The translations under genes and the position numbers were made by a program. A stretch of 64,000 nt of DNA from positions 62,001 to 126,000 of the IMG/VR virus record IMGVR_UViG_3300040801_004532; one strand, given 5' to 3'. Positions 10,983 to 51,920 of the stretch are shown here, piece by piece (positions within the stretch are counted from its first letter, which is position 1; every line of letters begins with the position of its first letter). A model generated the notes under the pieces. That model was not told the origin of the DNA and searched no databases. It saw only the letters and a program-made list of their open reading frames with translations.

Positions 10983-10987
10983 TAGAT

Positions 10988-11402: not shown

Positions 11403-11406
11403 ACAC

Positions 11407-11482: not shown

Positions 11483-11498
11483 ATAAGAAAGGGTTGAA

Positions 11499-11789: not shown

Positions 11790-11796
11790 CTATTAC

Positions 11797-11871
11797 TGGC
11801 GTGTAGCTCAGAGGCAGAGCTGGTGGCTGTTAACCACCGAGTCGCAGGTTCGATCCCTGCCATGCCAGCCA
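11797..11871 (+). tRNA. tRNA-Asn(GUU) copy 2
   Basis: near-identical to copy 1. Confidence 0.95.
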
Positions 11872-11906
11872 TATCAAAAAATTTTGTTTAATGAAGGGAG
11901 CCTATA

Positions 11907-12158: not shown

Positions 12159-12171
12159 CAAGGAGAAATTA

Positions 12172-12462: not shown

Positions 12463-12477
12463 GAACAAAATATAAAT

Positions 12478-12505
12478 AGCGGCTTAGCTCAGAGGTAGAG
12501 CATCT
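12478..12505 (+). pseudogene. tRNA 5' fragment (acceptor 5' strand plus D arm)
   Basis: AGCGGCT-TA-GCTC-AGAGGTA-GAGC-A, then abrupt loss of tRNA pattern before the HNH ORF. Confidence 0.7.
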
Positions 12506-12521
12506 AATAAGGAATTTCAAA

Positions 12522-13166: not shown

Positions 13167-13333
13167 TAATAAAATTCAAATGTGTATCATGTAAAAGAGA
13201 AGTATGGAAAAGGATGAATCCTGACTCCATTGCTTCTGCAATATTAGAAACTGGAGAAACAAATCCTCCATCAACAGGATTACATATTTATTGTCCTGAA
13301 TGTGGATATCGTAACTATTTCAGATTTAATTAA
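13136..13333 (+). CDS. zinc-ribbon protein
   Basis: CVSC...CPECG; AAGGAG SD. Confidence 0.6.
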   Translation: MPENYEECEIIIKFKCVSCKREVWKRMNPDSIASAILETGETNPPSTGLHIYCPECGYRNYFRFN

Positions 13334-13334
13334 T

Positions 13335-13418
13335 GCGGACGTTGGAGAGTCTGGTACTCCATCAGCCTTCCAAGCTGACGCGCAAGCATCGCGGGTTCGA
13401 ATCCCGCCGTCCGCTCCA
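13335..13418 (+). tRNA. tRNA-Gly(UCC), extended variable loop
   Basis: TCAGC-CT-TCC-AA-GCTGA, 12-nt variable region, U73-CCA. Confidence 0.9.
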
Positions 13419-13440
13419 ACTCTTTCTAAGGAATTGTAAA

Positions 13441-13632
13441 ATGAAACCAAAAGAAATTTTAGAACAAATGGAACAATGTAGAAATGCTATTGGAAAAGAA
13501 CGAGATAAACTCAGAGATCTCGAAATTGAATTGGAGAGCCTAACAGAATCAATCGACGAGGGGTATGAAAACCTAGAATCAGCGATCGTGGAATTTAGAG
13601 GAGCAATCGAAAATTTAAGCGAGCAAACATAA
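13441..13632 (+). CDS. small coiled-coil protein
   Basis: heptad Leu/Glu pattern; AAGGA SD. Confidence 0.55.
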   Translation: MKPKEILEQMEQCRNAIGKERDKLRDLEIELESLTESIDEGYENLESAIVEFRGAIENLSEQT

Positions 13633-13637
13633 TCTAG

Positions 13638-13712
13638 GCGGGTGTGGCTCAGAGGTAGAGCGCCTTGCGCCCAGCGAGGAGACCGAAGGTTCAAATCCTT
13701 CCACCCGCTCCA
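13638..13712 (+). tRNA. tRNA-Gly(CCC), G at position 33
   Basis: GCGGGTG/CACCCGC, CCTTG-CG-CCC-AG-CGAGG, U73-CCA. Confidence 0.85.
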
Positions 13713-13752
13713 TTTTCAAATGCGGGAAAATGTAACGAAGAAAGACAGGAAA

Positions 13753-14127
13753 ATGAAACATCCATGTAAAAATTGTATTGTAAAAGTATGTTGTAAAAAT
13801 CAATGTCCAGAGTTTGATAAATTTTCGACTATTGTGGCAAAGTTAACTGTAATTAGTGGTATTACTCTTTCATTGATTTTGTTCATTCCATTATTCTATT
13901 ATATGACTAACAATGGATATGCAGGAGTTCCAGTATTAATGGTATGGACATCCTGTATGTTTTTTAGTAGAGTGATACAATTCATGGTATCAAAAAATTC
14001 TGATATTGAAACACAAGGCAGAAAAGACTTTTTTATTTCATTTATATTCGCTCCACCAATATTAGTTACATTTATTCTTATATTAATTTTAAAACCATTT
14101 GTACAAGCGGGTGTAGCTCAGAGGTAG
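13753..14127 (+). CDS. membrane protein with N-terminal Cys motif
   Basis: HPCKNCIVKVCCKNQC plus TM helices; stop inside tRNA-Gly(GCC). Confidence 0.6.
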   Translation: MKHPCKNCIVKVCCKNQCPEFDKFSTIVAKLTVISGITLSLILFIPLFYYMTNNGYAGVPVLMVWTSCMFFSRVIQFMVSKNSDIETQGRKDFFISFIFAPPILVTFILILILKPFVQAGVAQR

Positions 14128-14181
14128 AGCATGACGTTGCCAACGTCAGGGTCGTCGGTTCAAATCCGATCACCCGCTCCA
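14107..14181 (+). tRNA. tRNA-Gly(GCC)
   Basis: TGACG-TT-GCC-AA-CGTCA; U73-CCA. Confidence 0.95.
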
Positions 14182-14193
14182 GAAAGGATTAAC

Positions 14194-14559
14194 GTGAGTA
14201 CATGGAATACTTTAAAAAATAAGTTTAATGAAGAAAAAGAAATTTCAGCAAGTATAATATATAACAGATTTTCAGAAGCAAAAGGAACAAAGAGCTACAA
14301 AGACCTAGGAACAGTTACAGCATCAACAGTTAGAAATTATCTAAAAACGCTAGTGGGTTGTGGTTTTATTTCTCGAGAATATAAACATCTTTCTGATAAA
14401 AATTTATATGTTCCGGCATCTTCTGTATATATTTTAAAATACAAAATACCAGATAAATTAACCTATAACGAAGCAAGAAAACTATCGAAGAATCCCTGGA
14501 TGATTTGGTTTAAGTATCCAGAAATCCACATGACCCAAAAAAGGAGAGAAGGTGAATAG
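14194..14559 (+). CDS. winged-helix-like hypothetical protein (family of 3)
   Basis: GTG start after AAGGA; TVRNYLKTLVGCG...KIPDKL...WMIWF. Confidence 0.55.
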   Translation: MSTWNTLKNKFNEEKEISASIIYNRFSEAKGTKSYKDLGTVTASTVRNYLKTLVGCGFISREYKHLSDKNLYVPASSVYILKYKIPDKLTYNEARKLSKNPWMIWFKYPEIHMTQKRREGE

Positions 14560-15052
14560 ACTTTTTCGTAACTTTTTTAGAAATATAAAATGTGGCGTTA
14601 TTAATATTTTCCTTTGGCTTCCAGTAATATGGAAAGATAGATATTGGGATTATACATTTATTTATCATATACTTAGACGCAAACTCTATCTAACAGAGAA
14701 GAAATTCAGAAATGCAAATTTTTATGTTGGTCAAAAAAAAGACGCCGATAAAATGAAGATTTGCATTAACGCTTTAGATAGACTTATTGAAGATAGATAT
14801 GATGAACATGCTTTTAAAAAACACGATGAAAAATGGGGAAAAGCCGAATTTAATTTTGAACCCAAAGATGATAAAACCCCCGAGTATAAACAGTGTATTA
14901 TCACCCACAAAAATGTCCAGAGTGAAGAAGATGATAAAAAGGAAAGAAAGGATTTCAAACGAGCAGTTGAACACGAAGATATGCTGAGACAACAAGATTT
15001 GGATCTTCTGTTTAACACCATGCGAAAACATATTAGAGGATGGTGGGAATAA
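14552..15052 (+). CDS. hypothetical phage protein
   Basis: WLPVIWKDRYWDY motif; ORF track. Confidence 0.7.
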   Translation: MNRLFRNFFRNIKCGVINIFLWLPVIWKDRYWDYTFIYHILRRKLYLTEKKFRNANFYVGQKKDADKMKICINALDRLIEDRYDEHAFKKHDEKWGKAEFNFEPKDDKTPEYKQCIITHKNVQSEEDDKKERKDFKRAVEHEDMLRQQDLDLLFNTMRKHIRGWWE

Positions 15053-15070
15053 TCATGGAGATCAATAATT

Positions 15071-15325
15071 ATGGAGACAGAACAAAGAGGTGAGGACGAT
15101 ATTGCCCTAGATAAAGCAAGGTGGAAAAATCGTAGACGAATGGCGTGGATTTCCCTCATCTCAATGTTAATTGTAACCGGCTTAATTTTGTTTACTGACA
15201 TTGTTCCTGAATCAAGATTAACAATCCTCACAGAAGTTATTACATGGTTTTATTTTAGCTGTGCATCTATAATTGGGATGTACATGGGAGCAACAACTTG
15301 GGCAAACATAAAAGGGAATAGATGA
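15071..15325 (+). CDS. small two-TM membrane protein (possible holin)
   Basis: basic RWKNRRR followed by two TM helices. Confidence 0.5.
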   Translation: METEQRGEDDIALDKARWKNRRRMAWISLISMLIVTGLILFTDIVPESRLTILTEVITWFYFSCASIIGMYMGATTWANIKGNR

Positions 15326-15864
15326 AAGAAAACCCTGTTGAATTTGAACTAGGAGAAAATATACAAGTATCAAAGGACGAAATATTCTTTACTAAAAAGG
15401 ATACACCATCCATAGTTTTAATAAATCCGAAATATCCTCATAATGTAGGAGCAGCATTAAGAGCATGCTCTTGCTTTGGAGCAAAAAATATTATTTTCAC
15501 AGGGGACCGCGTTTCGTTGGAACCAAAGGGTGTTAAAGGATATAGGTTACCCAGAGAAGAAAGAATGAAGGGATATAGTGACGTCAAAATTATCAATGAT
15601 AACTACCCCTTCAATAGGTTTCCTAAAGATGTAGTCCCCATTGCTGTAGAAGTAAGGGATAACTCAGAAAGATTACAATATTTTGATCATCCAAGAAATG
15701 CAATATATGTATTTGGACCAGAGGATGGAAGTATTCCCCAAATAGCTTTAAAACACTGTCACAGGTTTTTATTGATACCAAGTAAGCATTGTTTGAATTT
15801 GGCTGCAGCGGTTTATCTTATTTTATACAAGAGAGCGGAACAGTGGGGGTTTCCAATAACTTGA
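15322..15864 (+). CDS. SpoU/TrmH-family RNA 2'-O-methyltransferase
   Basis: NPKYPHNVGAALR, VFGPEDGSI, IP...CLNLAAAV motifs. Confidence 0.85.
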   Translation: MKENPVEFELGENIQVSKDEIFFTKKDTPSIVLINPKYPHNVGAALRACSCFGAKNIIFTGDRVSLEPKGVKGYRLPREERMKGYSDVKIINDNYPFNRFPKDVVPIAVEVRDNSERLQYFDHPRNAIYVFGPEDGSIPQIALKHCHRFLLIPSKHCLNLAAAVYLILYKRAEQWGFPIT

Positions 15865-16030
15865 GTCTTCAAGCTAAATCCCTATATGGTCAAGCTTCGT
15901 TGGCAATAGTCCAGTGGCAACCAAGGCCAGAAATGGTGACGTAACCAATCGTCTTAAATAAGTGCTAGCTACTCAGTGAGTAAACCTGGCAAGAGGGTGG
16001 AAGGCCCTCAAAACAAAGAAAGGATCAATC

Positions 16031-16195
16031 ATGAAATGTTCATTTTGTAAAAAAGATGAATCAGAAGTGTATAAATTGATTGCTGCATCTGAAAAAGTTG
16101 CAATATGTGATCAATGTGTGCTCCAATGTCTAGATACATTAATTTACCCTGACTCAGTTATTGAAATTGATCTAGACGAAGATAATGATAAATAA
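16031..16195 (+). CDS. stand-alone ClpX C4-type zinc-binding domain (54 aa)
   Basis: manual translation MKCSFCKKDESEVYKLIAASEKVAICDQCVLQC, acidic tail; AAGGA SD. Confidence 0.8.
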   Translation: MKCSFCKKDESEVYKLIAASEKVAICDQCVLQCLDTLIYPDSVIEIDLDEDNDK

Positions 16196-16199
16196 CTAT

Positions 16200-16276
16200 G
16201 GGACTGTAGCTCAGTCAGGTAGAGCGCAAGGTTGAAGCCCTTGGCGTCGGTGGTTCAATTCCGCCCGGTCCCACCA
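16200..16276 (+). tRNA. tRNA-Phe(GAA)
   Basis: CAAGG-TT-GAA-GC-CCTTG; ACCA. Confidence 0.93.
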
Positions 16277-16302
16277 CTCTTTTGAAAATAGAAAGGTCAA
16301 AA

Positions 16303-16482
16303 ATGATAAGGATAAGGAAAAGTGAAAAATCTTATATAATTGTTTCAAGTCAGGATGTAAATTATTTAGAAGAAGAAGTTAATGTTTTTATCGAAAAAGG
16401 TTATAAACCTAAAGGTGGAATAGCTATCTCTGATGATCATGGAGATTTTTATCAAGCAATGTATAAAGAATTTAAAAGATAA
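16303..16482 (+). CDS. DUF1737-like small protein
   Basis: LEEEVNVFIEKGYKPKGGI pattern. Confidence 0.5.
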   Translation: MIRIRKSEKSYIIVSSQDVNYLEEEVNVFIEKGYKPKGGIAISDDHGDFYQAMYKEFKR

Positions 16483-16488
16483 GTAAAA

Positions 16489-16899
16489 ATGAAGACAAGA
16501 ACAAAACAAGGAACAATCAAAGGGAATAGACGAATATCTGTAAAAAACGAAAATGGTAATTGGAGTGTTCATATAGTGAAAACAAGATATGGAAAATCTA
16601 TTTGGAATCTACTTAGAGAATATATAAACAGTCTTGATATTGGAACACAATTTTCAAGACTAGACGCCAAATTAAAAATTTATTCAACATTCACTGTTGC
16701 TAAAGCAATGGTTTCAAGAGTTGGAACAGAAGATAATTACTTAAATTATTTATGTAAAGTTGGGATATTAAAAAAAGTAAAACTAGGTGTATGCGAAAAA
16801 ATACAAGATGTTCCTGAACAATTAACAGTTACAAAATTACGAGAATTGGCTACTGATCGAAACTGGAAATTATGGTTTATAAAACCTGAGGATTGGTAG
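16489..16899 (+). CDS. winged-helix-like hypothetical protein (family of 3)
   Basis: TEDNYLNYLCKVGIL...DVPEQL...WKLWF. Confidence 0.55.
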   Translation: MKTRTKQGTIKGNRRISVKNENGNWSVHIVKTRYGKSIWNLLREYINSLDIGTQFSRLDAKLKIYSTFTVAKAMVSRVGTEDNYLNYLCKVGILKKVKLGVCEKIQDVPEQLTVTKLRELATDRNWKLWFIKPEDW

Positions 16900-16901
16900 T
16901 T

Positions 16902-17225
16902 ATGAATAAACGTATAGAGAAAAGTTCTTGGAGAAGAATAAAACGATTTATAAACTCAAAAGAAATAGGTTATGTTTTTACAAGGAAGGAATTCTTATCT
17001 GAATTAAAAGAAGTTATCCCAGGAACTCTTGATACATATAGGGGTTATCTTGAGGGATTTCGTGTATTGGAAAGAGCAGGGAGAGGAAAATATAAACTAA
17101 TCCAAAAAATTCCAGAAAAAATGAACACAGCATCATTCACTTATCTAATGTCACAAGACAAATGGAAACGATGGTTTATTCCATTACAAGAACAAATAGA
17201 TAGGATGGAACATAGGTATAAATAA
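16902..17225 (+). CDS. winged-helix-like hypothetical protein (family of 3)
   Basis: TLDTYRGYLEGFRVL...KIPEKM...WKRWF. Confidence 0.55.
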   Translation: MNKRIEKSSWRRIKRFINSKEIGYVFTRKEFLSELKEVIPGTLDTYRGYLEGFRVLERAGRGKYKLIQKIPEKMNTASFTYLMSQDKWKRWFIPLQEQIDRMEHRYK

Positions 17226-17233
17226 TTGTATGT

Positions 17234-17310
17234 GGTGTGGGTACTCGAGTGGACTCAGAGGCAAGGTTGTGGCCCTTGTTACGCGGGTTCGAATCCCGTC
17301 CCTCACCCCA
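17234..17310 (+). tRNA. tRNA-His(GUG)
   Basis: G-1 and C73, CAAGG-TT-GTG-GC-CCTTG. Confidence 0.9.
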
Positions 17311-17314
17311 ATAA

Positions 17315-17423
17315 CGAGAAGTAGCGTTCGCCCGAAAAGAGAGGATGTTTACATCCAAGAACAGATGCAGGCAGGATCTGTCCCGGGACCCTGTCGGTGG
17401 TGCGAGGCCATCCTTCTCGGCCA
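17315..17423 (+). ncRNA. 109-nt degenerate tRNA-like RNA
   Basis: CGAGAAG/CTTCTCG-G-CCA acceptor; GGTGG-TGCGAGG-CCATC T-arm-like stem; internal hairpins GGATG/CATCC and CAGAT/ATCTG. Confidence 0.55.
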
Positions 17424-17442
17424 AAACAAAAGGGAAAAAGAA

Positions 17443-17583
17443 ATGAATAAAAGAATCAATATTTCTAAATTCTTTAACCCATCTGTAATATCATTTGGTG
17501 TTGAAATAGAATGGTCACCAACATATAAAACAATTGAATTTTTATTTTTCAAATATTCAATAATTATATACTTTATAGATTAA
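17443..17583 (+). CDS. small hypothetical protein
   Basis: ATG 17443; C-terminal part of a track ORF. Confidence 0.45.
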   Translation: MNKRINISKFFNPSVISFGVEIEWSPTYKTIEFLFFKYSIIIYFID

Positions 17584-17601
17584 ACGGAAGGAGCTTTTTA
17601 A

Positions 17602-17787
17602 ATGCTTTATGAATTTGAGTGTAAAAACTGTGGGAAAAGGTTTGAAGAAATAAGAAAGCTAAATCAAAACTCAGATAAAGCAACATGTCCTGATTGCAAA
17701 GGAGAATCAAAAAAAGTAATGTCAACATTTGGATTTAAGATCATTGGTTTTGCTTCAATCAATGGATATTCACATGCGAATAAATAA
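17602..17787 (+). CDS. FmdB-family zinc-ribbon protein
   Basis: YEFECKNCGKRFE...CPDCKG. Confidence 0.75.
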   Translation: MLYEFECKNCGKRFEEIRKLNQNSDKATCPDCKGESKKVMSTFGFKIIGFASINGYSHANK

Positions 17788-17809
17788 AAATTGCTGAGAG
17801 GAGAAATCA

Positions 17810-18007
17810 ATGGCAGCAGTTGTTGCGAGAATGCGAGAACGTTGTGTAATAATTCATCCAAAAAGAACGATTAGGGTTAAATCAAAAACATGGACCAGAA
17901 TTTTTGGTTCTCGTGAAACTTATGTTGATATTGGGGATCTATCTATTGAACCAACAGAAGATGAAATAAATCAATTTTTAGAAAGAGAAAAATTGATTCA
18001 ACTTTAA
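17810..18007 (+). CDS. hypothetical protein
   Basis: GAGGAG SD. Confidence 0.55.
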   Translation: MAAVVARMRERCVIIHPKRTIRVKSKTWTRIFGSRETYVDIGDLSIEPTEDEINQFLEREKLIQL

Positions 18008-18011
18008 ACAA

Positions 18012-18051
18012 ATCAGGGGGTCGCAGATTCGAATCCTGTCGGGGGGTTCCA
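18012..18051 (+). pseudogene. tRNA-Arg 3' half duplicate
   Basis: ATCAGGGGGTCGCAGATTCGAATCCTGTCGGGGGGTTCCA closely matches 18201-18239. Confidence 0.75.
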
Positions 18052-18107
18052 TTCATTATAATGAATGAAACTCAAATGAAATAACAAAAATAATTCATTA
18101 TAATGAA
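18052..18107. promoter_or_regulatory. two copies of the 14-bp palindrome TTCATTATAATGAA
   Basis: exact copies at 18052-18065 and 18094-18107. Confidence 0.5.
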
Positions 18108-18161
18108 AATCTAATTGAAAATAGTGGAGAATCTCTCAATGTCGAGTTATTGATGTTTAAC

Positions 18162-18239
18162 GCCCCTGTAGCTCAGCGGAATTAGAGCACCTGACTACGG
18201 ATCAGGGGGTCGCAGGTTCGAATCCTGTCAGGGGTTCCA
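18162..18239 (+). tRNA. tRNA-Arg(ACG)
   Basis: CCTGA-CT-ACG-GA-TCAGG; complete cloverleaf. Confidence 0.9.
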
Positions 18240-18254
18240 GAAAGGAGATCCTAA

Positions 18255-18452
18255 ATGGCACTTGGAATTGGTTCTGCAATGAAAGAGGATTTAGAACGTG
18301 AACAAAAAGAAAAATACGATGATGGACCATTAGCTATTTCCCCATCAATGAAAGAAGATCTTAAAAGAGATTTAGAAAGAGAAAAATTCTTATATGAAGA
18401 AACAACAACAATTGGTTCAGCAATGAAAGAAGATCTAAAAAACGAGGAATAA
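18255..18452 (+). CDS. small protein with three S(A)MKEDL repeats
   Basis: IGSAMKEDL / ISPSMKEDL / IGSAMKEDL; AGGAG SD. Confidence 0.6.
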   Translation: MALGIGSAMKEDLEREQKEKYDDGPLAISPSMKEDLKRDLEREKFLYEETTTIGSAMKEDLKNEE

Positions 18453-18455
18453 AAA

Positions 18456-19232
18456 ATGTCTGAGGAAACTCAACAAAACGGGACATCGGAAAAACCTTCT
18501 GATGCCCTAAAGGACTTATTAGATCCAACATATCCAATACTAGCAAAGTTCAAAGAATTGTGTCCTGGATCATATAAGCACTCACAAAATCTAGCATCAA
18601 TTATTGAAGGAATTGCAATTGATCTTAAACTGGATGTTACATTCATGAAGGTCGCTGCAACTTACCATGACGTTGGGAAAATGTTTAATCCTAAATATTT
18701 TTCAGAAAATCAACTTGAGGATGAAAATCCTCATGAAAAATTAGATCCAAAAATGAGCTTTCAAATTATAAGCAGACACGTTTCTGATACTGCGCTTATC
18801 CTTTTAAATGACAATAACTTTCCCCGAGAATTAATCCAAATTGCTTCTCAACATCATGGTTCATCAGTTATGAAATATTTCTTCGATAAATCAGGAATTG
18901 ACATTGATGATTATTTTCGTTATAGATCCGAAAAACCAACCTGCGTTGAAGCTGCAATTCTTATGATTTGTGATTGTATTGAAGCAAGATCTAGATCCGA
19001 AGTACAATCCGGAACGTTTGATCCTACAGAAATAATTGAATTAACTATTAACGATTTGCTAAGCGATGGTCAGTTAGATGATGTTGTAATGAGACTTGGG
19101 GATCTTCAAAAGATCAAGGATGCCCTGGCAAGGGAGTTGGAAGGATCATTCCAAAAACGAGTCGACTATCGAAAAGCAAAAGAAGAGGTAAAGAAAATCG
19201 AAGATAAAAAATCACAAACAGAAAAAGAATGA
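18456..19232 (+). CDS. HDIG-type HD-domain phosphohydrolase (soluble, PgpH/7TM-HD-like catalytic domain)
   Basis: PGSYKHS, YHDVGKM, FSENQ, II.RHV, QHHG, MICDCIEA.SR motifs. Confidence 0.85.
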   Translation: MSEETQQNGTSEKPSDALKDLLDPTYPILAKFKELCPGSYKHSQNLASIIEGIAIDLKLDVTFMKVAATYHDVGKMFNPKYFSENQLEDENPHEKLDPKMSFQIISRHVSDTALILLNDNNFPRELIQIASQHHGSSVMKYFFDKSGIDIDDYFRYRSEKPTCVEAAILMICDCIEARSRSEVQSGTFDPTEIIELTINDLLSDGQLDDVVMRLGDLQKIKDALARELEGSFQKRVDYRKAKEEVKKIEDKKSQTEKE

Positions 19233-19329
19233 AGAACAAAATAAAAATAATGGAGGCAATATGAAATATTTGTTTGTCTACAGTGCAGGAGGTTCTCATG
19301 GCTAAGTAACTAAAAGGAGGTGAAAAGTC

Positions 19330-19518
19330 ATGAGCAACAAATCCAGCAAAGGCGGTAATAGCCGTAAACACGGACGTGCCGGAAGAAAACCATCTCACAA
19401 TCGCTATAATGTTGACCGTAGATGGGAAATCAATAAAGCACGTAAGGCCGCAAAAATCAAAAAACAACTTGAGAAAAAAGCTACCCGTAAAACTCGTAAA
19501 GAAAAAGGAAATTATTAA
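19330..19518 (+). CDS. small very basic protein (62 aa)
   Basis: AGGAGG SD; K/R-rich. Confidence 0.6.
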   Translation: MSNKSSKGGNSRKHGRAGRKPSHNRYNVDRRWEINKARKAAKIKKQLEKKATRKTRKEKGNY

Positions 19519-19522
19519 TGGC

Positions 19523-19699
19523 TTGCATTGGGGTCTTCGAAGCCCGGGGATACTCCTTTGAATGGATAAAGTGTCACCCGAAAGAAGGCCCCAGTGCAAA
19601 AATGCCCAAGAAAGATTAAGTATACTAAATGGGCGAGGGATGGGATAGACCTAAAAGGTCAATGGAGGCAGTTCAGGCCAGAACTGGTGTAGCCCATTT
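19523..19699 (+). ncRNA. candidate structured RNA
   Basis: 16-bp stem 19523-19538/19584-19599 and a second AAATGGGC/GCCCATTT multibranch domain. Confidence 0.45.
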
Positions 19700-19707
19700 T
19701 AACCTAA

Positions 19708-19783
19708 GTCGGTGTGGCCAAGTGGTCTAAGGCGGCAGGCTGCAATCCTGTGATCGTGGGTTCGAATCCCTCCACCGACTCCA
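19708..19783 (+). tRNA. tRNA-Cys(GCA)
   Basis: GCAGG-CT-GCA-AT-CCTGT; U73-CCA. Confidence 0.93.
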
Positions 19784-19800
19784 TAACGAATGGTGAACAA

Positions 19801-20283
19801 ATGAAAAAAGTAATCCTTTCTTTTATAATCCTATTATTTTTATCAACCCCATGTTTCTCCATAGATCTAAACTCAGAAACTTTAGTTGATACTGTAATAG
19901 AATCGTTAGAAAAAAATCCTGAAAGATGGATAATAACATCTAATGATCTATGTTATTCTGATGTGGATATTAAAGAACTAAGAAAAACATCATTTCCTGA
20001 CGTTGATGATCGAGTAATAGTTTCTTTATCTTATAGTGTTTTAGATTCATTAAATTTTGTAAAATTTGATAAACCAATTGAAAAATGGGTTGACGGAGAA
20101 GATGAAAAAAGGTTAATAAAAGCTATCAGGTTATATATTTATAAACGTCTCCACAATGAAATTTCTTTATTTGATAGAATAAATGAACCTCAAAAATATA
20201 AGACAAAAGACGAGGAACCTTCAAAAGAGGTTACCTCCGAAGTTCCTGAAATCACTTCAAAAGACGGATCTAAAAGATTATGA
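19801..20283 (+). CDS. exported hypothetical protein
   Basis: signal peptide MKKVILSFIILLFLSTPCFS. Confidence 0.6.
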   Translation: MKKVILSFIILLFLSTPCFSIDLNSETLVDTVIESLEKNPERWIITSNDLCYSDVDIKELRKTSFPDVDDRVIVSLSYSVLDSLNFVKFDKPIEKWVDGEDEKRLIKAIRLYIYKRLHNEISLFDRINEPQKYKTKDEEPSKEVTSEVPEITSKDGSKRL

Positions 20284-20693
20284 ACAAAGAACCAAAACAA
20301 GTTATAGTTATTAGAAAAGATTTGGGGATGAGAAAAGGCAAGATGTGTGCTCAAGCAGCGCATGCTTCAATGAAAGCCATTCTTGATGAACTGTATAGAA
20401 TACCATTTGGTATTGATGATTGTCAAATAAACTTTCAAATGTTGCTAAAAAAAGACGATCCATTAACTAAATGGATTGAAGGAATTTTTACAAAGGTTGT
20501 TGTTAGTTGTGATTCTGAAGAAGAATTGTTAGCTTTGAAATCTAGGGCTGATATTTATAAAGTTAGAAATGCATTAATCCAAGATGCAGGAAAAACAGAG
20601 TTTCATGGTGAATCAACATATACTGCTCTAGCAATAGGTCCTGATTATCCTGAAAAAATAGATAAAGTAACAGGTCATTTAAAGCTCCTATAG
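20280..20693 (+). CDS. pth2: peptidyl-tRNA hydrolase type 2
   Basis: KQVIVIRKDLGMRKGKMCAQAAHA...TKVVV...DAGKTEF...TALAIGP...IDKVTGHLKLL. Confidence 0.92.
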   Translation: MNKEPKQVIVIRKDLGMRKGKMCAQAAHASMKAILDELYRIPFGIDDCQINFQMLLKKDDPLTKWIEGIFTKVVVSCDSEEELLALKSRADIYKVRNALIQDAGKTEFHGESTYTALAIGPDYPEKIDKVTGHLKLL

Positions 20694-20768
20694 GTCCGTA
20701 ACTCAGCGGTTTAGAGTACCTGCCTTTTAAGCAGGGAGTCGAGGGTTCGAATCCCTCCGGGCCTACCA
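20692..20768 (+). tRNA. tRNA-Lys(UUU)
   Basis: CCTGC-CT-TTT-AA-GCAGG; ACCA. Confidence 0.95.
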
Positions 20769-28213: not shown

Positions 28214-28555
28214 TTACCGATGGTCTCCATCTCCATGAAGCACATCTCTTTTTTTTCTATCGCTCAATTTTTCATTGTTTCGTTTTGGAATTTCGTTATA
28301 GTCTATTCCAAGCCAATCACAAAATCTAGCAGAATACCAATGATAATCACCCATCTCTTCTATGATTGCCTGCTTAAACTCGTCATCAATTACACCATTT
28401 TTATCTCTAAATAGCTTTTTAACTTTCTCAGTAAATTCTCCAACTTCACCAACAATTCCCAAGACATAATATAACCAACCAGGGTCTAAACAATCTTGGG
28501 CTGAGGTTCCGACATCAGTTTTCCTACACTCTTTTTGATATTCATTAAAGTCCAT
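28214..28555 (-). CDS. MazG-like nucleotide pyrophosphohydrolase
   Basis: LGIVGEVGEFTEKVKK...EEMGD..WY...N.EKL..R. Confidence 0.8.
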   Translation of the reverse strand: MDFNEYQKECRKTDVGTSAQDCLDPGWLYYVLGIVGEVGEFTEKVKKLFRDKNGVIDDEFKQAIIEEMGDYHWYSARFCDWLGIDYNEIPKRNNEKLSDRKKRDVLHGDGDHR

Positions 28556-29187
28556 TAGCACCCACTTTCATGATGGTCACATGTACATTCGGATTTTCCA
28601 CATGCGCAAACGGGAGGTTCATATCCACTATGAATTTGACTCATAGTATAACCAAATTGATTTTGAAGGATTTGAAGAATTAATTCTTTTGACATACCAA
28701 GGAGGGGCGCAACAATTTTGATTGGTTTTACTCCGCTTATTGCACTTACTTCATTCATCTTTACAACATATTCTTGATAACAATCTGGAAATAAATTGAT
28801 TCGATCTGAATAATCAGGGCCATACCATACTTCATCTATTCCCATATTTTCTGCAACGCTCATAGCAAGTCCTAAAAATATAGTATTTCTTGCCGGCACA
28901 TTCATTGGATGAACATTTTCCCATCGAGACTCAACGAGATCTCCAGTCAACCCACTATTAATATTTAGTCCATTAATTTTGATTATCTGATATTTAACAT
29001 CTATAGAATCTAATTGTTTAACTGCATAATCTAATTCTTCAATGTGTTTTTGTCCATAATCAATTAATAAGCAATAAGGATTTTTTCCTGCCATTTTTGC
29101 AAGATGAAGCATCAATAAACTATCAGCTCCGCCGCTATATAACATTACTACATCAACATTAAGAACTTCATTTGCTACATTTTCCAT
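28555..29187 (-). CDS. queC: 7-cyano-7-deazaguanine synthase-like protein (divergent C-terminus)
   Basis: LYSGGADS, DYGQKH, VPARNTIF, FPDC, APLL..SK; AGGAG SD before MENVANE. Confidence 0.8.
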   Translation of the reverse strand: MENVANEVLNVDVVMLYSGGADSLLMLHLAKMAGKNPYCLLIDYGQKHIEELDYAVKQLDSIDVKYQIIKINGLNINSGLTGDLVESRWENVHPMNVPARNTIFLGLAMSVAENMGIDEVWYGPDYSDRINLFPDCYQEYVVKMNEVSAISGVKPIKIVAPLLGMSKELILQILQNQFGYTMSQIHSGYEPPVCACGKSECTCDHHESGC

Positions 29188-29274
29188 TAAACCTTCTCCT
29201 TTCACAATTTGGTTTTTGTTACTCATTAAACAGTTTATCATCTCAAAAAATTTTATAGTTAAATTCTCATTGTC

Positions 29275-29294
29275 TATATATATAAATAACTGAA
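29275..29294 (+). promoter_or_regulatory. candidate phage promoter TATATATATAAATAACTGAA
   Basis: identical copy at 34171-34190 and 17/20 match at 58585-58604; each precedes a + strand unit. Confidence 0.55.
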
Positions 29295-29503
29295 TGATAG
29301 AGCATTTGGTTTTCAAAAGAAAGGAGAACTGGGTGGATCGTGGATCAATCTTTACAATAATAATCGTATTCGCTCTATCATTAACTGGTGCTATTATAGG
29401 CATGTTGGTAGGCGCAATTGTTCTACCAACTCGTTTCCTTGATGGAAAAGTAAATTCCATTGGGGATATTTTAACCCCGCAAGATGATCGGGATAAAATT
29501 TAA
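29294..29503 (+). CDS. small membrane protein
   Basis: one TM helix; start may be downstream of the AGGAG at about 29320. Confidence 0.45.
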   Translation: MIEHLVFKRKENWVDRGSIFTIIIVFALSLTGAIIGMLVGAIVLPTRFLDGKVNSIGDILTPQDDRDKI

Positions 29504-31498: not shown

Positions 31499-32407
31499 TT
31501 ATAGATCTCGCTCCCCTTTTAGCATATCTCTTGTAACAGAAAGGTCATTACAAGTCCATGCGTCCCACATAAAATCATTGATATATGAGTATGGAAGATA
31601 TCCGTATCCCCCTTGTCCCCAATATGGACCCCAGCTATTCTTAAATTTAATCAACTTTCTGCTATCATCATAACCAACAGCACAGATAGCATGACCGCCG
31701 TACATCTCATTTGGGTTTGCAGGATAAGGTACAATTCCATCGCTTCCAACATAAAAAATTTCTCTAAAACATGCTACTCCGATTGGAATTGGTCTTTCAA
31801 CTAAAGCAGCCTTGAGTTCGCTCAATGATTCAATTCTCCAATAGGATTCAATCATGTTCCATCTTGCAGTCATATTAGCCCAGCTAGCGGGTTTCCCATA
31901 ATCACTATCATTGTAAGGCCAAGCTTTTTCTTTTGGAACTCCAATTCTATTAAGAACCTTCATAGCAAATCTAATTGATGTTCCTTCTTCGTCTGGCCAA
32001 TAGTCAATCTCCTTACACTTCCAATATACCCACGCCTCAGAAAGGTCATAAACTTCTCCCTTTCTATGATCTTTTTTACCTTCCAAAACTTCTTCTTTAT
32101 GTTCTTTTGTTTCTTGCCATTCTTTCATAGCTGTTACAGCAAATCCAACACAGCTCCCCAAATATAGTTGGTCCTTAACTGGAGTCATAGCTGGAGTATG
32201 ATCAACTTTAGATGGCAATGAAAGAAGTACTTCATCAACAGAATCAACTGTTTTAAGAAGTCTTGTCTGAAATTTATAATCTCTCTCGTCTTCTGGATCT
32301 CGATAATATGTAAGAGGTCTTCTAAAATCCTGTGCTTCTAATTGACGATTTATGATCCTTTTAAAAAATTTTTTTCCTTTGATAATTAATTTTTTATAAT
32401 AAAACAT
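31499..32407 (-). CDS. papain-like C1 family cysteine peptidase
   Basis: VKDQ...GSCVGFA, GGHAICAVGYD, KNSWG..WG..GYG. Confidence 0.9.
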   Translation of the reverse strand: MFYYKKLIIKGKKFFKRIINRQLEAQDFRRPLTYYRDPEDERDYKFQTRLLKTVDSVDEVLLSLPSKVDHTPAMTPVKDQLYLGSCVGFAVTAMKEWQETKEHKEEVLEGKKDHRKGEVYDLSEAWVYWKCKEIDYWPDEEGTSIRFAMKVLNRIGVPKEKAWPYNDSDYGKPASWANMTARWNMIESYWRIESLSELKAALVERPIPIGVACFREIFYVGSDGIVPYPANPNEMYGGHAICAVGYDDSRKLIKFKNSWGPYWGQGGYGYLPYSYINDFMWDAWTCNDLSVTRDMLKGERDL

Positions 32408-32415
32408 GTTTCCTC

Positions 32416-33435
32416 CTAATATGACCATTCAGGTATTTGTTCCAACCTGACATCATATTTATTAGCTCTCTTATCTGGCCGTATTCTAAGAAATCCAGGA
32501 TGTGAAAATGTTATTGATTTGCTGCTCCCAATTAAATTATACACACCATTTTTAAACTCGTATGTTGGTGTTGGTGTTATTCTATTTCTAAAATAATTTA
32601 CCTCAATGATCAAATTTGGCTTTACAAAAAATTCACCCTTTTTAGAATACAAGGTGTTGTCTTTAATAAATTTATAAAGTGCCTGTCGTCTTTTCCTTTT
32701 AAATCCAGTACCAATTTTTGAACTACTTCGAAATTTACCATCTCGATCTATAAATGATGTAAGAAGATAAGATACCTCATCCTTACTCCATGCTTTCATA
32801 TCCTCATGCCCGGCACCAATTACAACAACATCAGCAGAAGATACAAATTTGATTTTGTAATTTTTACCATCAACATTTCTTCCGATAACACCATCGAATC
32901 CTTCAGCATTTAATGTTTCTTCATATAAATCTCTAAACTCTTTTAATCCACCAACAACCATTTTAGGTCTTGTAATATGTGGTAACCCATATGAACCCAA
33001 TGTTTTATCAAAGAAATGCAACGATTCCCTAAAGCTATATTTTTTATTATTTATTTCAATAACATCAAGCGGATAGTGATAAATCAAATCTTTGTTTTGT
33101 GGTTCGGCAAATCTTTTAACAACGCTTTGTGTTTTATTAAAAGGGAGAAGCCTTCCAGAAACTTTGGCTATCAATTCTCCAGGAATTTTGGCACTTTCAA
33201 TACCATTCTTTTTAAATAATGTTTCATACTCATTTATGGCTGGAATATCAACAATTTCCCTGGCTCTAGTAGTTTGAAAAAATGGTTTTGATCCTGCTTC
33301 ATAAACTAAGACTCCGAGCATTCCATCAACCTTCTGAATAAAATACCCACCAGAGAATTGTAATGAAACAAAATCATTATAAGAAATCTGTCTTAATCCA
33401 ATATCTTTTTTCCATTGTTCAGCATAATTTTTCAT
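32416..33435 (-). CDS. ATP-dependent DNA ligase (LigC/LigD-like)
   Basis: QKVDG (motif I), GEL, LDV, DGVI, YKIK...D.VVIG, IGTGF, P.F.R.RPDK. Confidence 0.8.
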   Translation of the reverse strand: MKNYAEQWKKDIGLRQISYNDFVSLQFSGGYFIQKVDGMLGVLVYEAGSKPFFQTTRAREIVDIPAINEYETLFKKNGIESAKIPGELIAKVSGRLLPFNKTQSVVKRFAEPQNKDLIYHYPLDVIEINNKKYSFRESLHFFDKTLGSYGLPHITRPKMVVGGLKEFRDLYEETLNAEGFDGVIGRNVDGKNYKIKFVSSADVVVIGAGHEDMKAWSKDEVSYLLTSFIDRDGKFRSSSKIGTGFKRKRRQALYKFIKDNTLYSKKGEFFVKPNLIIEVNYFRNRITPTPTYEFKNGVYNLIGSSKSITFSHPGFLRIRPDKRANKYDVRLEQIPEWSY

Positions 33436-35492: not shown

Positions 35493-36167
35493 TTACTTAT
35501 CATATTTGACTCCATCAATTTCGTTAAGAATATCAAAAACACAATCTAAATCAAAATCAAAATTTAGTTTTTGTTCTTTTTTATATGCAAATGCTCGACT
35601 AGGATCAATCTTCTGATATTTTCTATTTTTTATTGTTCTCATTTTTTTGCGAAAATTAATATCTGGCTTTAGTCCACAATGCTTATAAATTTTAAATAGC
35701 ATATCATCAGGGTTTATTAACAAATCTTCATATTTAAATGTATATGTGTTATTCATCTTCATTATTTTCTTTGTAGCAACTGGAACAATCCCTTTATAGG
35801 TTCTTATTGGCTGTTCTAAATTTTTAATATATTTAAATTTATTTACATTTGAAACAGCAACATCATATGGATGCCTGATAATATGCAAGATTCGACTTTT
35901 ACTATTAAAAAATTTATTCCACTTTTCACAATATTTGATTATTGGAAATTTCCTTGCAGAAGGAAAATAGGGAACTTTTTCTCCCCAATTATCTTTGGTA
36001 ACATCAATGCCACGATTTTCAACAAATTGAATAAGGGTCTGCTTATCCTTGCAAATTTTCAAAAGAAAGTTTTCATGATAAATCCTTCTAACTTGTGGGT
36101 GTAATTGTAGCAATCGTCGAAGAAGAGTCGTTCCGCTCCTTTGGAAACCAACAACTAAAATATTCAT
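35493..36167 (-). CDS. sulfotransferase family protein
   Basis: VVGFQRSGTTLLRRLL..HP, WGEK.P, HIIRHPYD..VS, KYEDL. Confidence 0.85.
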   Translation of the reverse strand: MNILVVGFQRSGTTLLRRLLQLHPQVRRIYHENFLLKICKDKQTLIQFVENRGIDVTKDNWGEKVPYFPSARKFPIIKYCEKWNKFFNSKSRILHIIRHPYDVAVSNVNKFKYIKNLEQPIRTYKGIVPVATKKIMKMNNTYTFKYEDLLINPDDMLFKIYKHCGLKPDINFRKKMRTIKNRKYQKIDPSRAFAYKKEQKLNFDFDLDCVFDILNEIDGVKYDK

Positions 36168-37215
36168 TAATAACCCCCACCATCCGCCTAGCAGATTGTC
36201 CATCATTCAACATACGAAGTTGATCTGGATAATTGCTTTTGGGAGGATTCTCTAATAAATTTATTACAGATGAAAATATCTTATCGCTATCAGGTTGACA
36301 TAATCTAGTTGTACCATAATTAATCGTATATTCAATATTTGAAGTATCCCTAATTGCAACGCAGGGAACGTCCAAAATAGAAGTTTCTTGTTGAACCCCA
36401 TCAGAATCTGTTATAACACAGGATGCATTTTTCATTAACTTAATAAAATCAAAATATCCAAGAGGGTCTAAAACATCAATCATTCCTGTGTGTTTCCATA
36501 ATCCAAATTCATCAATCATCTTACTTGTTCTTGGGTGAACAGTAAATACAACATGATGTTTTTCAGACAGTTTCGATAGCCCGATTATAATCTCTTCTAA
36601 GTTATCTTTTATATCTGTATTCACAGGTCTATGTATTTCAACTAATAAAAATAGGTCGTCATCATAAATTGGAGTCCGTTCAGTATAAAATAAAAGATTA
36701 TCAATCATTGGATCTCCAACAAGGTGAATCTTTTTTGAATCAATCCCCTCATTTAATAAGTTCCTTCTATCTTGTGGAGAAATTGGAAACAACAAGTCTG
36801 ACACATGATCTGTTACAATTCGATTTATTTCTTCGGGCATTTTTTTATCAAAAGATCTCATTCCAGCTTCCTGGTGGGCAATTGGTATGTGTAATTTAGC
36901 TGCAACAAGAGCACAACCCATAGTTGAATTTACATCACCAACAACCAGAACCATATCAGGTCTTTCATCAAGACAAACTTTCTCAAATCGATCCATTATC
37001 TTTGCAGTTTGTTCACCATGATTTCCGGAACCAACTTCTAAGTGTTTGTATGGCTCTTTTAAACCAAACTCTTTAAAAAACACTTCGTTCATATTGTAGT
37101 CATAATGCTGCCCAGTATGGATAATTTCATACTCAAAATCTCGTAAAATAAGCTCTCGCTCAATCGCAGCTATTTTCATAAAGTTCGGTCTTGCTCCGCC
37201 AATCAAGTAAATCAT
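36088..37215 (-). CDS. wecB: UDP-N-acetylglucosamine 2-epimerase (WecB/WbpI-like)
   Basis: GARPNFMK, HTGQHYD, VGDVNST, HQEAGMRS, EEINR, TDSDGVQQE. Confidence 0.9.
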   Translation of the reverse strand: MIYLIGGARPNFMKIAAIERELILRDFEYEIIHTGQHYDYNMNEVFFKEFGLKEPYKHLEVGSGNHGEQTAKIMDRFEKVCLDERPDMVLVVGDVNSTMGCALVAAKLHIPIAHQEAGMRSFDKKMPEEINRIVTDHVSDLLFPISPQDRRNLLNEGIDSKKIHLVGDPMIDNLLFYTERTPIYDDDLFLLVEIHRPVNTDIKDNLEEIIIGLSKLSEKHHVVFTVHPRTSKMIDEFGLWKHTGMIDVLDPLGYFDFIKLMKNASCVITDSDGVQQETSILDVPCVAIRDTSNIEYTINYGTTRLCQPDSDKIFSSVINLLENPPKSNYPDQLRMLNDGQSARRMVGVINEYFSCWFPKERNDSSSTIATITPTS

Positions 37216-49101: not shown

Positions 49102-49659
49102 TTAGTCGGTTTCTTTATCTGCCTTCCATGCTTTATCAACAGCATCAAAAAATTTCTTTTTCTTCTCGTCACTCAAATCCTCAATGCTATCAATATTCCA
49201 ATTCTTCATCATTTTCTTAAAGAAGTCTCTATATTTTTCTTCCCTTATTAATTTTGAAATGGATACAGCAATCGCTTCTTGGGTAGGGGTTAATTCGTCT
49301 TTTGTAAGTTGATCAACAACTGATTTATGGAGCGACTCTAAATCTTGATCGGGTACATTATCAATCTCATTTTCAACTTCATCTAGAACAACATCAACAT
49401 CGTCGATTGCTTCTTTGATTTTCTTGTATTCAGTATAATCCCCATTAAGAATAATATCAACTAAATTTAATGCTTCTTTTATATTCATATCTCTACTCCT
49501 TGGTTTACCCATTGGTCCTTGTGTTTTACCACGAGCTTGTCTCTGTCCTTTACCTTTTTCCTGACCCTCAGGAACACATTTTTTTCTGATTGGTCACCAC
49601 CGGGTTCCTTCCGGGCATTTAGGTACTTTTTTAGTTTCATAACCAATTGGTTTTGGCAT
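49102..49659 (-). CDS. candidate UGA-recoded (selenocysteine) protein, 185 aa; in-frame internal start at 49488 gives 128 aa
   Basis: ATG 49659 two nt after the upstream stop; KCPEGTRW-TGA(49594-49596)-PIRKKCVP in frame with track ORF 49102..49512; hairpin at 49558-49574. Confidence 0.6.
49558..49574 (-). promoter_or_regulatory. bacterial SECIS-like hairpin
   Basis: TTCCTGA-GGG-TCAGGAA beginning 19 nt after the in-frame UGA. Confidence 0.5.
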
Positions 49660-49661: not shown

Positions 49662-50036
49662 TTATATTACCCCCGTGGCTCTACGTCTAAATTCAGCAGC
49701 CTTTGCGCGAGCCTTATCTTGTGATTCCCTGAAATTATCAATCCTTTTTTGGTATCTTGTTGCTGCTCTTTTTAAAACACCAATACAACGATTTGGATCT
49801 GGAGCTGTAGTACATTTTCCTGTAATACCGTTCAATCTTGTAATCGCTCTATTTGCTGCAGTTATTTGACAAGTCGCCTTACAGAATCTACGTTCATAAT
49901 TATTTTCTAATCTTCTATGGCATCGTGTTTCATAACAATCAGTCCATTCATCTTTAAAATCACCATCAATATCAGTAACTGCAATGCTAGCATCAAACTG
50001 CTCAAAAAGTAAATTAAGGTACTTGTCAATCTTCAT
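49662..50036 (-). CDS. Cys-rich hypothetical (possible virion) protein
   Basis: ORF track. Confidence 0.6.
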   Translation of the reverse strand: MKIDKYLNLLFEQFDASIAVTDIDGDFKDEWTDCYETRCHRRLENNYERRFCKATCQITAANRAITRLNGITGKCTTAPDPNRCIGVLKRAATRYQKRIDNFRESQDKARAKAAEFRRRATGVI

Positions 50037-51086
50037 TTATTTGCCCATCCCTTTAACGTCTGCAATAGTGCGAATTAAAAGACCATTTGCAACCGTTGTT
50101 AATGGATTTTTAGCACGTCTAATCTCTGAAACCTCAAATGGCAACTCGTGTGTTGAAATGACATTTTTAAACAACTCAACAAAACCCTCTGGAATACTTG
50201 TCCCGCCAGAAACAACAATTGGAATCTTATCATCTATTTCAATATCAACTTTTTCATCAAACTCTTTGATAATTCGTTTTACAGTATAGTCAATCAGGGC
50301 TTTATGATAATAGAAAAGAGCTTCCAAAACCCTCTTAGTTTTCTTATTTTTAACTTCAACATCACCAGATAATTTCATATATTTCTCTTTCAAATTTGTA
50401 ACCCTATTTGGAACCATTGCTAAATCTGCCGCAACCTGTTGATCAATCCAATCGCCAGCTCGAGCGGTTGAGAATTTTAATGCTTCAACGCCCTTATATG
50501 AAATTGCTATATTGGCCATACCAGCACCAAAGCTAATTCCAATCCCACTAAAGTTCTCTTTGGCACATTCAGAATAAATAATCGCCATCGCCTCATTGAC
50601 AGATGTATGATTAACACCCAAACGATTAAGAATTCTTGCAAAAACATTTTCATGATATGTAACAGAACGTCCCTCGTCAATCGCTTCAGCGGGTACCGAA
50701 TACGAACAATAAACCTCTTTATCTTTGGTCTCTCCAATTAGTTCCTTTAGCATCAATGTCAAAACATCAATTGCAGCAATTTCTTTTGGAGAGATAAGTC
50801 CTTTTTCCATAGGTCGAGAAATACTTGTGCCAAAAATATTCGCAAACTCAAATGCGTCAGAACCAATAATAAATAACTCTCCATCATCGCTTTCAACATA
50901 ACTAATATTACTTAGTTGGTTGAGCGAGACATCATCCTTCTCTACTTTAAGAAATACATTCCTTGTAATATTAACATCATCTGAGTCAGAACTTGCACAT
51001 ACCAGATGCATTGTTCCGACATCAAGCCCCAAACATTTAACTTTACTATGTTTTTTCATTTCTTTGTTATTGTTTTCTTCGTTCAT
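50037..51086 (-). CDS. actin-like ATPase (MreB/ParM/MamK superfamily)
   Basis: LGLDVGT (phosphate 1), NEAMA, ISFGAGM (phosphate 2), VVSGGTS (adenosine). Confidence 0.8.
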   Translation of the reverse strand: MNEENNNKEMKKHSKVKCLGLDVGTMHLVCASSDSDDVNITRNVFLKVEKDDVSLNQLSNISYVESDDGELFIIGSDAFEFANIFGTSISRPMEKGLISPKEIAAIDVLTLMLKELIGETKDKEVYCSYSVPAEAIDEGRSVTYHENVFARILNRLGVNHTSVNEAMAIIYSECAKENFSGIGISFGAGMANIAISYKGVEALKFSTARAGDWIDQQVAADLAMVPNRVTNLKEKYMKLSGDVEVKNKKTKRVLEALFYYHKALIDYTVKRIIKEFDEKVDIEIDDKIPIVVSGGTSIPEGFVELFKNVISTHELPFEVSEIRRAKNPLTTVANGLLIRTIADVKGMGK

Positions 51087-51095: not shown

Positions 51096-51920
51096 TTATA
51101 AACAAATTACATTTGCCAAATACCCAGTAGAACACTCGCCACTATGACCATATTTATAATGACATTCTTTACAGACAGACCAAGCCAAATCTGGATCTAA
51201 AGCAAAAAATGGTTCTAATTTTTGTGGTCTTTCATGATGAACATGTTCTGCTTTTTTGCCACAATATTGACATTTGTAATTATCCCGTTCTAAAACATAT
51301 TTTCTAAAGTGATTATATTCTTCTTGTGTATAACCATGTTTAGTTTGCTTAAATGGATCTGATTGTAAATTATATAACGGGCATTCGATTTTACATTCAT
51401 CACAGCAATAAAAATAAGAATTATCACTTCCGTTTTTCTCCAAACATCGTATTCTTTCGTATATCTGTCTCTTTGTGGGTGTAAACCAACCAGTTTGTTC
51501 TTTTGAATTTTGACATTTGTGATTTTTACAATGTACTTGTATTTCCCTTTCTTCAATAGGTTTATTAGGATTATACCTCATCTCTTCTATTTTAGAAAAT
51601 AATTTATATTTTCTTTTTATTTTAGAAATTGTCATAAGACTATTTATACTCATCTTTTTCTTGCTATCAAGAGAATGTTTTTTTCCAAGCATTGGATGAG
51701 GTCTATCACTAAATGATTTTTTTAAGCTATCAACATGTTGTTTGCTTAAAGGGTTTCCTTTTCTAGCTTCACTAATCTTTTTTCTTGTTTCAAATGAGTG
51801 AGGTTTTCCCTTATTCCATGGAACATAATCTTTTTTTGCATCTCTCATTTTTTGTAGTGTTTTTTTTGAATAAATACCTGTTTTACCTTTATTCCACGGA
51901 CTCATTATCTTTATTTCCAT
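51096..51920 (-). CDS. NUMOD3 + HNH homing endonuclease
   Basis: PWNKGK repeats; DNYKCQYCG...HVHH...VCKECH. Confidence 0.85.
   Translation of the reverse strand: MEIKIMSPWNKGKTGIYSKKTLQKMRDAKKDYVPWNKGKPHSFETRKKISEARKGNPLSKQHVDSLKKSFSDRPHPMLGKKHSLDSKKKMSINSLMTISKIKRKYKLFSKIEEMRYNPNKPIEEREIQVHCKNHKCQNSKEQTGWFTPTKRQIYERIRCLEKNGSDNSYFYCCDECKIECPLYNLQSDPFKQTKHGYTQEEYNHFRKYVLERDNYKCQYCGKKAEHVHHERPQKLEPFFALDPDLAWSVCKECHYKYGHSGECSTGYLANVICL

Follow-up and report, generated by a model that had tools for sequence, protein, structure and literature searches.

Bacterial selenoprotein genes carry an in-frame UGA that is decoded as selenocysteine (Sec) with the help of a stem-loop, the SECIS, located inside the coding region immediately downstream of the UGA, the paradigm being formate dehydrogenase H of E. 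coli. The published bacterial SECIS model (PMC13188914) asks for a loop of 3-9 nt, an upper stem of 4-16 bp, G in the first two loop positions, 16-37 nt between the UGA and the loop, and a free energy of -7.5 kcal/mol or lower. Homologs with Cys aligned to the UGA form the Cys/Sec-pair signature by which selenoproteins are found (PMC13188914), and repeated turnover between the two residues is described for bacterial selenoprotein families (PMC1794560). Selenoproteins are catalogued for bacteria, archaea, eukaryotes and a few poxviruses, the known viral examples being the glutathione peroxidases of molluscum contagiosum and fowlpox (PMC8310308), which must use the Sec machinery of the host. In phages, stop codons are known to be read as sense through genome-wide reassignment driven by a suppressor tRNA, for example TAG read as Gln (code 15; PMC9523058), in genomes that are rich in tRNAs.

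The present work examines a small gene of a 248-kb phage contig, IMG/VR record IMGVR_UViG_3300040801_004532, within a stretch of 64,000 nt (bases 62001-126000 of the contig) referred to here as the window. The gene carries an in-frame UGA that relatives from other samples either keep at the same codon, with a hairpin after it, or replace by cysteine, which marks it as probably the first selenoprotein family seen in bacteriophages.

Genomic context

The window has long blocks of genes on one strand and carries DNA ligase, a helicase, a clamp-loader-like ATPase, QueC and a large glycosylation cluster. An array of 18 tRNAs plus a tmRNA continues upstream of the window's start; counted over window 1367-20768 (+) and the sequence L054 (276-4550), it comprises at least 23 tRNAs and the tmRNA (6211-6561, tag ADDYYTEVALAA), interleaved with small ORFs and with HNH endonucleases, one of them at 12522-13166. 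Two of the tRNA calls are unusually long, namely Ile(tat) of 97 nt at 10988-11084 and Gly(tcc) of 84 nt at 13335-13418. A tRNA at 4784-4860 (+) with a canonical cloverleaf has a CUA anticodon and is thus an amber suppressor; ARAGORN labels it 'Pyl' and Rfam scores it 63.8 bits as tRNA. TAG nevertheless ends 13 ORFs of at least 100 aa in the window and no convincing in-frame TAG was seen; its targets may lie elsewhere in the 248-kb genome. The stretch at about 28500-49100 (-) holds the sugar-modification cluster, with a GT9 heptosyltransferase-like protein, several GT1 glycosyltransferases, UDP-GlcNAc 2-epimerase (36088-37215) and a GFO/IDH/MocA oxidoreductase, together with QueC (28555-29460), a papain-family peptidase (31499-32428) and an ATP-dependent DNA ligase (32416-33435). 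The tmRNA and the Shine-Dalgarno (SD) sequences point to a bacterial host. No capsid, portal or terminase gene was found among the ORFs scanned in the window, and the viral label therefore rests on IMG/VR and on this gene content.

Structure of the locus

The original prediction described a candidate phage selenoprotein with an in-frame UGA between two cysteines and a SECIS-like hairpin, and in this respect every described element is present on the minus strand. The upstream ORF stops with TAA at 49664-49662, and the ATG lies two bases after that stop. The features are as follows.

49670..49674 (-), GGGGG SD-like run ahead of the ATG
49102..49659 (-), full recoded coding sequence: ATG at 49659-49657, 21 codons, UGA (proposed Sec), 163 codons and the TAA stop; product of 185 aa
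49597..49659 (-), N-terminal 21 codons, MPKPIGYETKKVPKCPEGTRW, ending in C-P-E-G-T-R-W, the first strand of a predicted knuckle
49594..49596 (-), in-frame UGA, proposed selenocysteine codon
49513..49593 (-), 27 open codons after the UGA, PIRKKCVPEGQEKGKGQRQARGKTQGP, with the second knuckle strand (K-C-V-P) and a Gly/Gln/Lys/Arg-rich linker, running into the 136-aa ORF 49512..49102
49558..49574 (-), bSECIS-like hairpin: 5' arm TTCCTGA (49574-49568), loop GGG (49567-49565), 3' arm TCAGGAA (49564-49558)
49486..49500 (-), internal AGGAG (49500-49496) and ATG (49488-49486), candidate start of a 128-aa short isoform
49105..49260 (-), C-terminal helical domain of about 50 aa (Y-R-x-F-F ... D-E-K-K-K-x-F-F ... 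W-K)

The motif around the UGA is C-x6-U-x5-C. The hairpin is a perfect 7-bp stem that starts 19 nt after the UGA, so that the loop starts at +26. TGA is an ordinary stop elsewhere in the window, ending 22 of the 82 ORFs of at least 100 aa on the coding strands. Of the 2,677 TGA triplets in the window, 0.8% are followed by a perfect hairpin of at least 7 bp with SECIS-type loop and spacing, and the hairpin alone is therefore not decisive. Among the 11 TGAs on coding strands that join two open segments in frame, however, only this one has such a hairpin and a Cys-rich coding context, the expected chance coincidence being about 0.1.

Orthologs in related phages

A blastn search of the locus against GenBank phages gave no match, scans of IMG/VR with the two neighbouring proteins found only the source contig, and IMG/VR scans with the protein itself gave only matches to the C-terminal domain. 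A scan of GTDB species-representative genomes found no relative, and an exact-sequence look-up of the 136-aa ORF gave no record. In contrast, a search of a large protein collection with the post-UGA piece alone gave 37 homologs. Eight of these (proteins P0007, P0008, P0011, P0014, P0016-18 and P0034) are full length and begin with a knuckle that reads C-x-x-G-x-R-W-C-P-x4-C-[VI]-P, with Cys exactly where the window has UGA; orthologs with Cys are called as single proteins of 172-204 aa. Most of the others start just after that position or further in, as a gene caller would start them if a stop were there, and the database call for the present contig (P0001) starts at the internal ATG.

DNA was examined for a subset of these homologs, that of P0024 not being among them. 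The loci (numbered with the prefix L) all lie in the same gene order: NUDIX, one ORF, a Volactin-like actin, an ORF of about 124 aa, this gene, and a family-9 glycosyltransferase (GT9). In the window the actin homolog (50037-51086, -) matches Pfam Volactin (PF25216, E = 2e-75) and is conserved in all related phage contigs, two genes upstream of the proposed Sec gene. The intervening 124-aa neighbour (49662-50036, -) is Cys-rich, has no Pfam or PHROG family, and is conserved in position in all relatives, where it is 112-132 aa. An HNH endonuclease gene (51096-51920, -) lies between the 201-aa ORF and the actin gene in this phage only; the relatives L047, L052 and L055 have no gene there, and it looks like a mobile homing-endonuclease insertion.

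The original prediction had named in advance the result that would count against it, namely homologs that fail to conserve the N-terminal segment or the alignment of Cys with UGA, and the opposite was found. Every truncated call whose DNA was read has TGA at the same codon, giving eight distinct sequences from JGI, ENA, Logan and NCBI assemblies: the window, L051, L038 (identical to L052 and L053), L039, L041, L047 (identical to L048), L049 (identical to L050) and the distant L060, at about 32% identity. Seven sequences (L040, L042 and L055-L059) have TGT or TGC there, and one relative, L043, lacks the extension altogether. L053 (NCBI GCA_035528855.1, contig DATKXV010000235.1) is a 36-kb contig with the TGA form and the same phage gene order, deposited inside a MAG named Candidatus Glassbacteria; it is either a mis-binned phage contig or a hint about the host.

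Evidence for readthrough

Each TGA form has a proper ATG and a conserved N-terminal peptide, the peptide of the window being conserved in L051, L041, L039 and L049, and G-rich SD-like runs precede the same ATG in all orthologs. Among the seven TGA forms that align without gaps (L060 left out), pN/pS is 0.29 for the eight codons before the UGA and 0.33 for the 27 codons after it. This frame has no stops apart from the UGA, while the other frames carry up to five, and both sides are therefore translated in one frame. About 25-30 single-base nonsense changes are possible in the extension, yet the only stop in all eight sequences is at the central Cys codon. On a tree of the conserved body, Sec and Cys forms interleave and require at least five changes. 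Decay or sequencing error does not explain this pattern, which is the Cys/Sec-pair signature used to find selenoproteins (PMC13188914).

The hairpin

All eight TGA forms have a hairpin of 6-8 bp whose loop of 3-5 nt (GGG, GGA, CGGGT, TGGAT, GTT, GGC) starts 23-26 nt after the UGA, with G in the first or second loop position followed by G or U, and all eight meet the geometric criteria of the bacterial model (PMC13188914). The hairpins use three different solutions, in three registers, laid over the C-V-P-x-G-x codons: UUCCUG(A) pairing with (U)CAGGAA, UGUCCCC pairing with GGGGAUG, and (G)UGUCCC pairing with GGGACA(C), partly achieved through amino-acid changes (Q to H, E to G, Q to D). Of the seven Cys forms only L058, a close relative of L038, keeps the hairpin; L055 has a 9-bp stem around a 15-nt loop, and the other five have nothing comparable (raw Fisher p 0.0014-0.007). 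Compared with synonymous recodings the hairpin region of the TGA forms is among the most stable, the fraction at least as stable being 0-0.18.

Some other tests of the hairpin are weak. The free energy in the window is -6.9 for the hairpin alone and -7.6 for the region +10..+48; with the latter region six of the eight reach the model's -7.5 kcal/mol, while L039 (-5.9) and L047 (-7.0) do not. Folds of the 63 nt from the UGA are at or below -8.5 in the seven TGA forms folded that way, but some use other pairings, and the energy criterion thus neither supports nor excludes a SECIS across the family. In the fixed register of the window's hairpin 73.6% of cells are paired against a shuffled mean of 72.6%, with one in-register U-A to C-G change; since the hairpins occur in three registers, the support is per sequence and not per column, and base-pair covariation does not decide the matter either way. 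Phylogenetically independent contrasts between TGA and hairpin number only 3-5, and all go the expected way or are ties (p 0.25-0.5). Rfam gave only tRNAs and the tmRNA at gathering score and, at E up to 10 on the locus, only chance hits. A lower SECIS stem pairing UGACC with GGUCA was considered and rejected, because GGUCA comes from the K-G-Q codons, also occurs in Cys forms, and is imperfect in the window, L038 and L039.

Selenocysteine machinery and host

As the original prediction stated for the window, no tRNA-Sec is seen there by ARAGORN or Rfam, nor was one found in the 4.6 kb upstream (68.6 kb of the contig in all) or in the ortholog loci. No SelA, SelB or SelD was found among the ten window ORFs of 287-642 aa scanned against Pfam. 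Most other ORFs of 250 aa or more are covered by precomputed Pfam hits on their orthologs in L047, which show none either; a few ORFs were not scanned, and about 180 kb of the contig was not seen. Host inference from the phage UDP-GlcNAc 2-epimerase failed, this enzyme being 40-48% identical to enzymes from many phyla. The host is unknown, and supply of the machinery by the host is therefore an assumption.

The protein

The protein has no Pfam family, and its function is unknown. A weak PHROG hit (phrog_28651, E = 1e-5) covers only the C-terminal 50 residues, a domain that recurs at the ends of many aquatic phage proteins; 34 other IMG/VR loci match only this part. An AlphaFold2 model of the Cys form P0011 (mean pLDDT 58.7) predicts a beta-hairpin for the knuckle, then a disordered Gly/Gln/Lys/Arg linker and helices, and Foldseek found nothing significant in the PDB or in viral models. 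There is no CxxU or UxxC redox motif and no thioredoxin-like fold, and membership among the thioredoxin-fold redox selenoproteins is not supported.

A profile of the knuckle finds 66 proteins at E of 1e-3 or better among 1.84 billion representatives. The motif C-P-x-G-x-x-W-[D/C]-x5-C-V-P is a widespread short module that occurs in up to nine tandem copies in unrelated long proteins (P0039, P0047, P0051, P0063, P0066), mostly with Asp in the central place; no family name was found for it and its function is unknown. The outer two cysteines therefore belong to a generic hairpin module, which, as inferred from the pattern, they staple, whereas the central Cys or Sec is an added residue beside the turn, for which no partner or ligand is known.

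An AGGAG or GGAGG followed by an ATG, just before the helical body, occurs in seven of the eight TGA forms and clearly in only one of the seven Cys forms. This suggests a knuckle-less isoform made alongside the selenoprotein, but the link is confounded by phylogeny.

Discussion

The observation of an in-frame UGA at a Cys position followed by a SECIS-like hairpin is confirmed in every detail. Its interpretation as a phage selenoprotein gene is supported, although three parts of that interpretation were not examined here, i.e., that the SelB and SelC of the host do the decoding, that the host is an anaerobe, and that the product is a virion protein; the redox/metal-binding label given to the N-terminal extension is a guess. 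In the favoured explanation, held with good confidence, the gene encodes a 185-aa selenoprotein of a jumbo phage. Translation would start at the ATG at 49659, and the hairpin would act as a bacterial SECIS at UGA 49596-49594, recruiting SelB carrying Sec-tRNA(Sec), most likely supplied by the host, whereupon Sec is inserted and translation continues to the stop at 49102. The Sec would sit next to the turn of the small N-terminal knuckle, joined by a flexible basic linker to an acidic helical body that ends in the C-terminal domain common in aquatic phages. Ribosomes that terminate at the UGA would release a 21-aa peptide, and the internal SD and ATG probably also give the 128-aa isoform without the knuckle. 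The anatomy, the Sec/Cys pairing, the conservation of the UGA and of a hairpin, and the coding constraint on both sides of the UGA are shown here, whereas dependence on SelB, host supply of the machinery, the short isoform and any chemistry of the Sec residue are inferred. There is no biochemical evidence, and selenium incorporation was not shown.

Two alternatives survive only as unlikely readings, to a similar degree. In the first, there are two separate products and no recoding: ribosomes stop at the UGA and release a peptide of 10-27 aa, the working protein is the short isoform, and the hairpin is a by-product of the C-V-P-x-G-Q codons or serves some other role in the mRNA. The internal start conserved in seven of eight TGA forms means that a functional product could be made without recoding, L043 shows that the body alone can be enough, gene callers pick the short ORFs, and the formal covariation test is not significant. 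On the other hand, the 27 codons checked after the UGA (of the 36 before the internal ATG in the window) stay open with pN/pS of 0.33, which untranslated DNA would not do, the stop always falls on the central Cys codon out of about 28 possible nonsense sites across at least five switches, the knuckle would be cut in half, and the hairpin is lost in most Cys forms. In the second, the UGA is read through but not as Sec, either by Cys insertion through a tRNA(Sec)-like tRNA(Cys) carried by SelB or by near-cognate or suppressor decoding helped by the hairpin. Some deltaproteobacteria have an extra Cys tRNA that mimics tRNA(Sec), and phages carry unusual 8/4 tRNAs (PMC5389517); the present phage invests in tRNAs, with at least 23 plus an amber suppressor, and only 68.6 kb of the contig was examined. 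Yet no tRNA with a UCA anticodon was seen in the regions examined, a general UGA suppressor would clash with the 22 ORFs that end in TGA, and a SECIS-type hairpin with a G-G/U loop is what SelB-dependent decoding predicts, the usual cargo of SelB being Sec. A sequencing or assembly error or a decaying pseudogene N-terminus, conceivable because the window is a single metagenome assembly whose reads were not inspected, is very unlikely and already close to refuted, given the same TGA in eight distinct sequences from independent projects and assemblers, the lack of any other stop or frameshift in them, and purifying selection on both sides of the UGA.

Other mechanisms were considered and rejected. 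Genome-wide TGA reassignment of the code 4 type does not fit the use of TGA as a stop and the single recoded-looking TGA join of the window. A programmed -1 frameshift at the A-run after the UGA is not supported, since the A7 run is present in the window and L041 only, while the others read AAAAAGAAA, AAAGAAAAA and similar, in step with Lys/Glu codon changes, and the site also lies after the stop. Re-initiation directly after the UGA was also rejected; a GTG codon follows only in the orthologs that read CCG GTG, for example L049, and not in the window.

A further hypothesis, which is not excluded but is doubtful, is that the phage uses the Sec machinery of the host as a switch. The UGA and SECIS together with the internal SD and ATG would give two isoforms, with and without the Sec knuckle, whose ratio would report the selenium and SelB status of the host during infection, and the repeated Sec/Cys exchanges would track moves between Sec-competent and Sec-lacking hosts. 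This would make it the first phage selenoprotein family and also a new kind of host-state sensing by recoding.

If Sec insertion is right, phages can depend on a non-universal host translation pathway, which adds a new host-range determinant, and gene callers systematically truncate such genes. Several Sec/Cys pairs of close relatives, for example L038/L058 and L039/L059, are available for asking what Sec gives that Cys does not, the SECIS could help to predict hosts, and the 5' region concerned is short, about 140 nt. A 2026 review of prokaryotic selenoproteomes (PMC13188914), a 2026 database of 111 bacterial selenoprotein families (PMC13326102) and the marine survey of the Global Ocean Sampling project (PMC2398784) make no mention of phages or viruses, and text searches found no report of a phage selenoprotein in the literature consulted, which is not complete, so that priority is not claimed with certainty. 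The mechanism proposed is the known bacterial one; what is new is that the gene is on a phage, the family is undescribed, the motif is unusual, and an internal start is coupled to the recoding site.

Compared with bacterial selenoprotein genes such as that of formate dehydrogenase H, the locus shares the in-frame UGA with Cys-containing homologs, the stem-loop inside the coding sequence immediately downstream, a distance to the loop within 16-37 nt, and frequent Sec/Cys exchange within the family. It differs in lying on a phage genome, in encoding a small protein that is non-enzymatic in appearance, in its C-x6-U-x5-C motif in a predicted beta-hairpin knuckle in place of CxxU in a thioredoxin-like fold or a metal site of a large enzyme, in its short stem of 6-8 bp, and in the conserved internal start that follows. 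The poxvirus glutathione peroxidases likewise are virus-encoded selenoproteins that use the host's machinery, and in fowlpox the SECIS also lies in the coding region; those genes, however, belong to eukaryotic viruses, have a eukaryotic-type SECIS and a known function, and were captured from cells, whereas here the signal is of the bacterial type and no cellular homolog was found among the GTDB species-representative genomes. Phages with stop-codon reassignment also read a stop codon as sense in tRNA-rich genomes, but there the change is genome-wide, while here a single UGA is recoded. Finally, the N-terminal knuckle matches the two-Cys beta-hairpin repeat module C-P-x-G-x-x-W-D-x5-C-V-P (P0039, P0063 and others), in which the central position is usually Asp, whereas in the present family it is Cys or Sec, an added reactive residue next to the turn.
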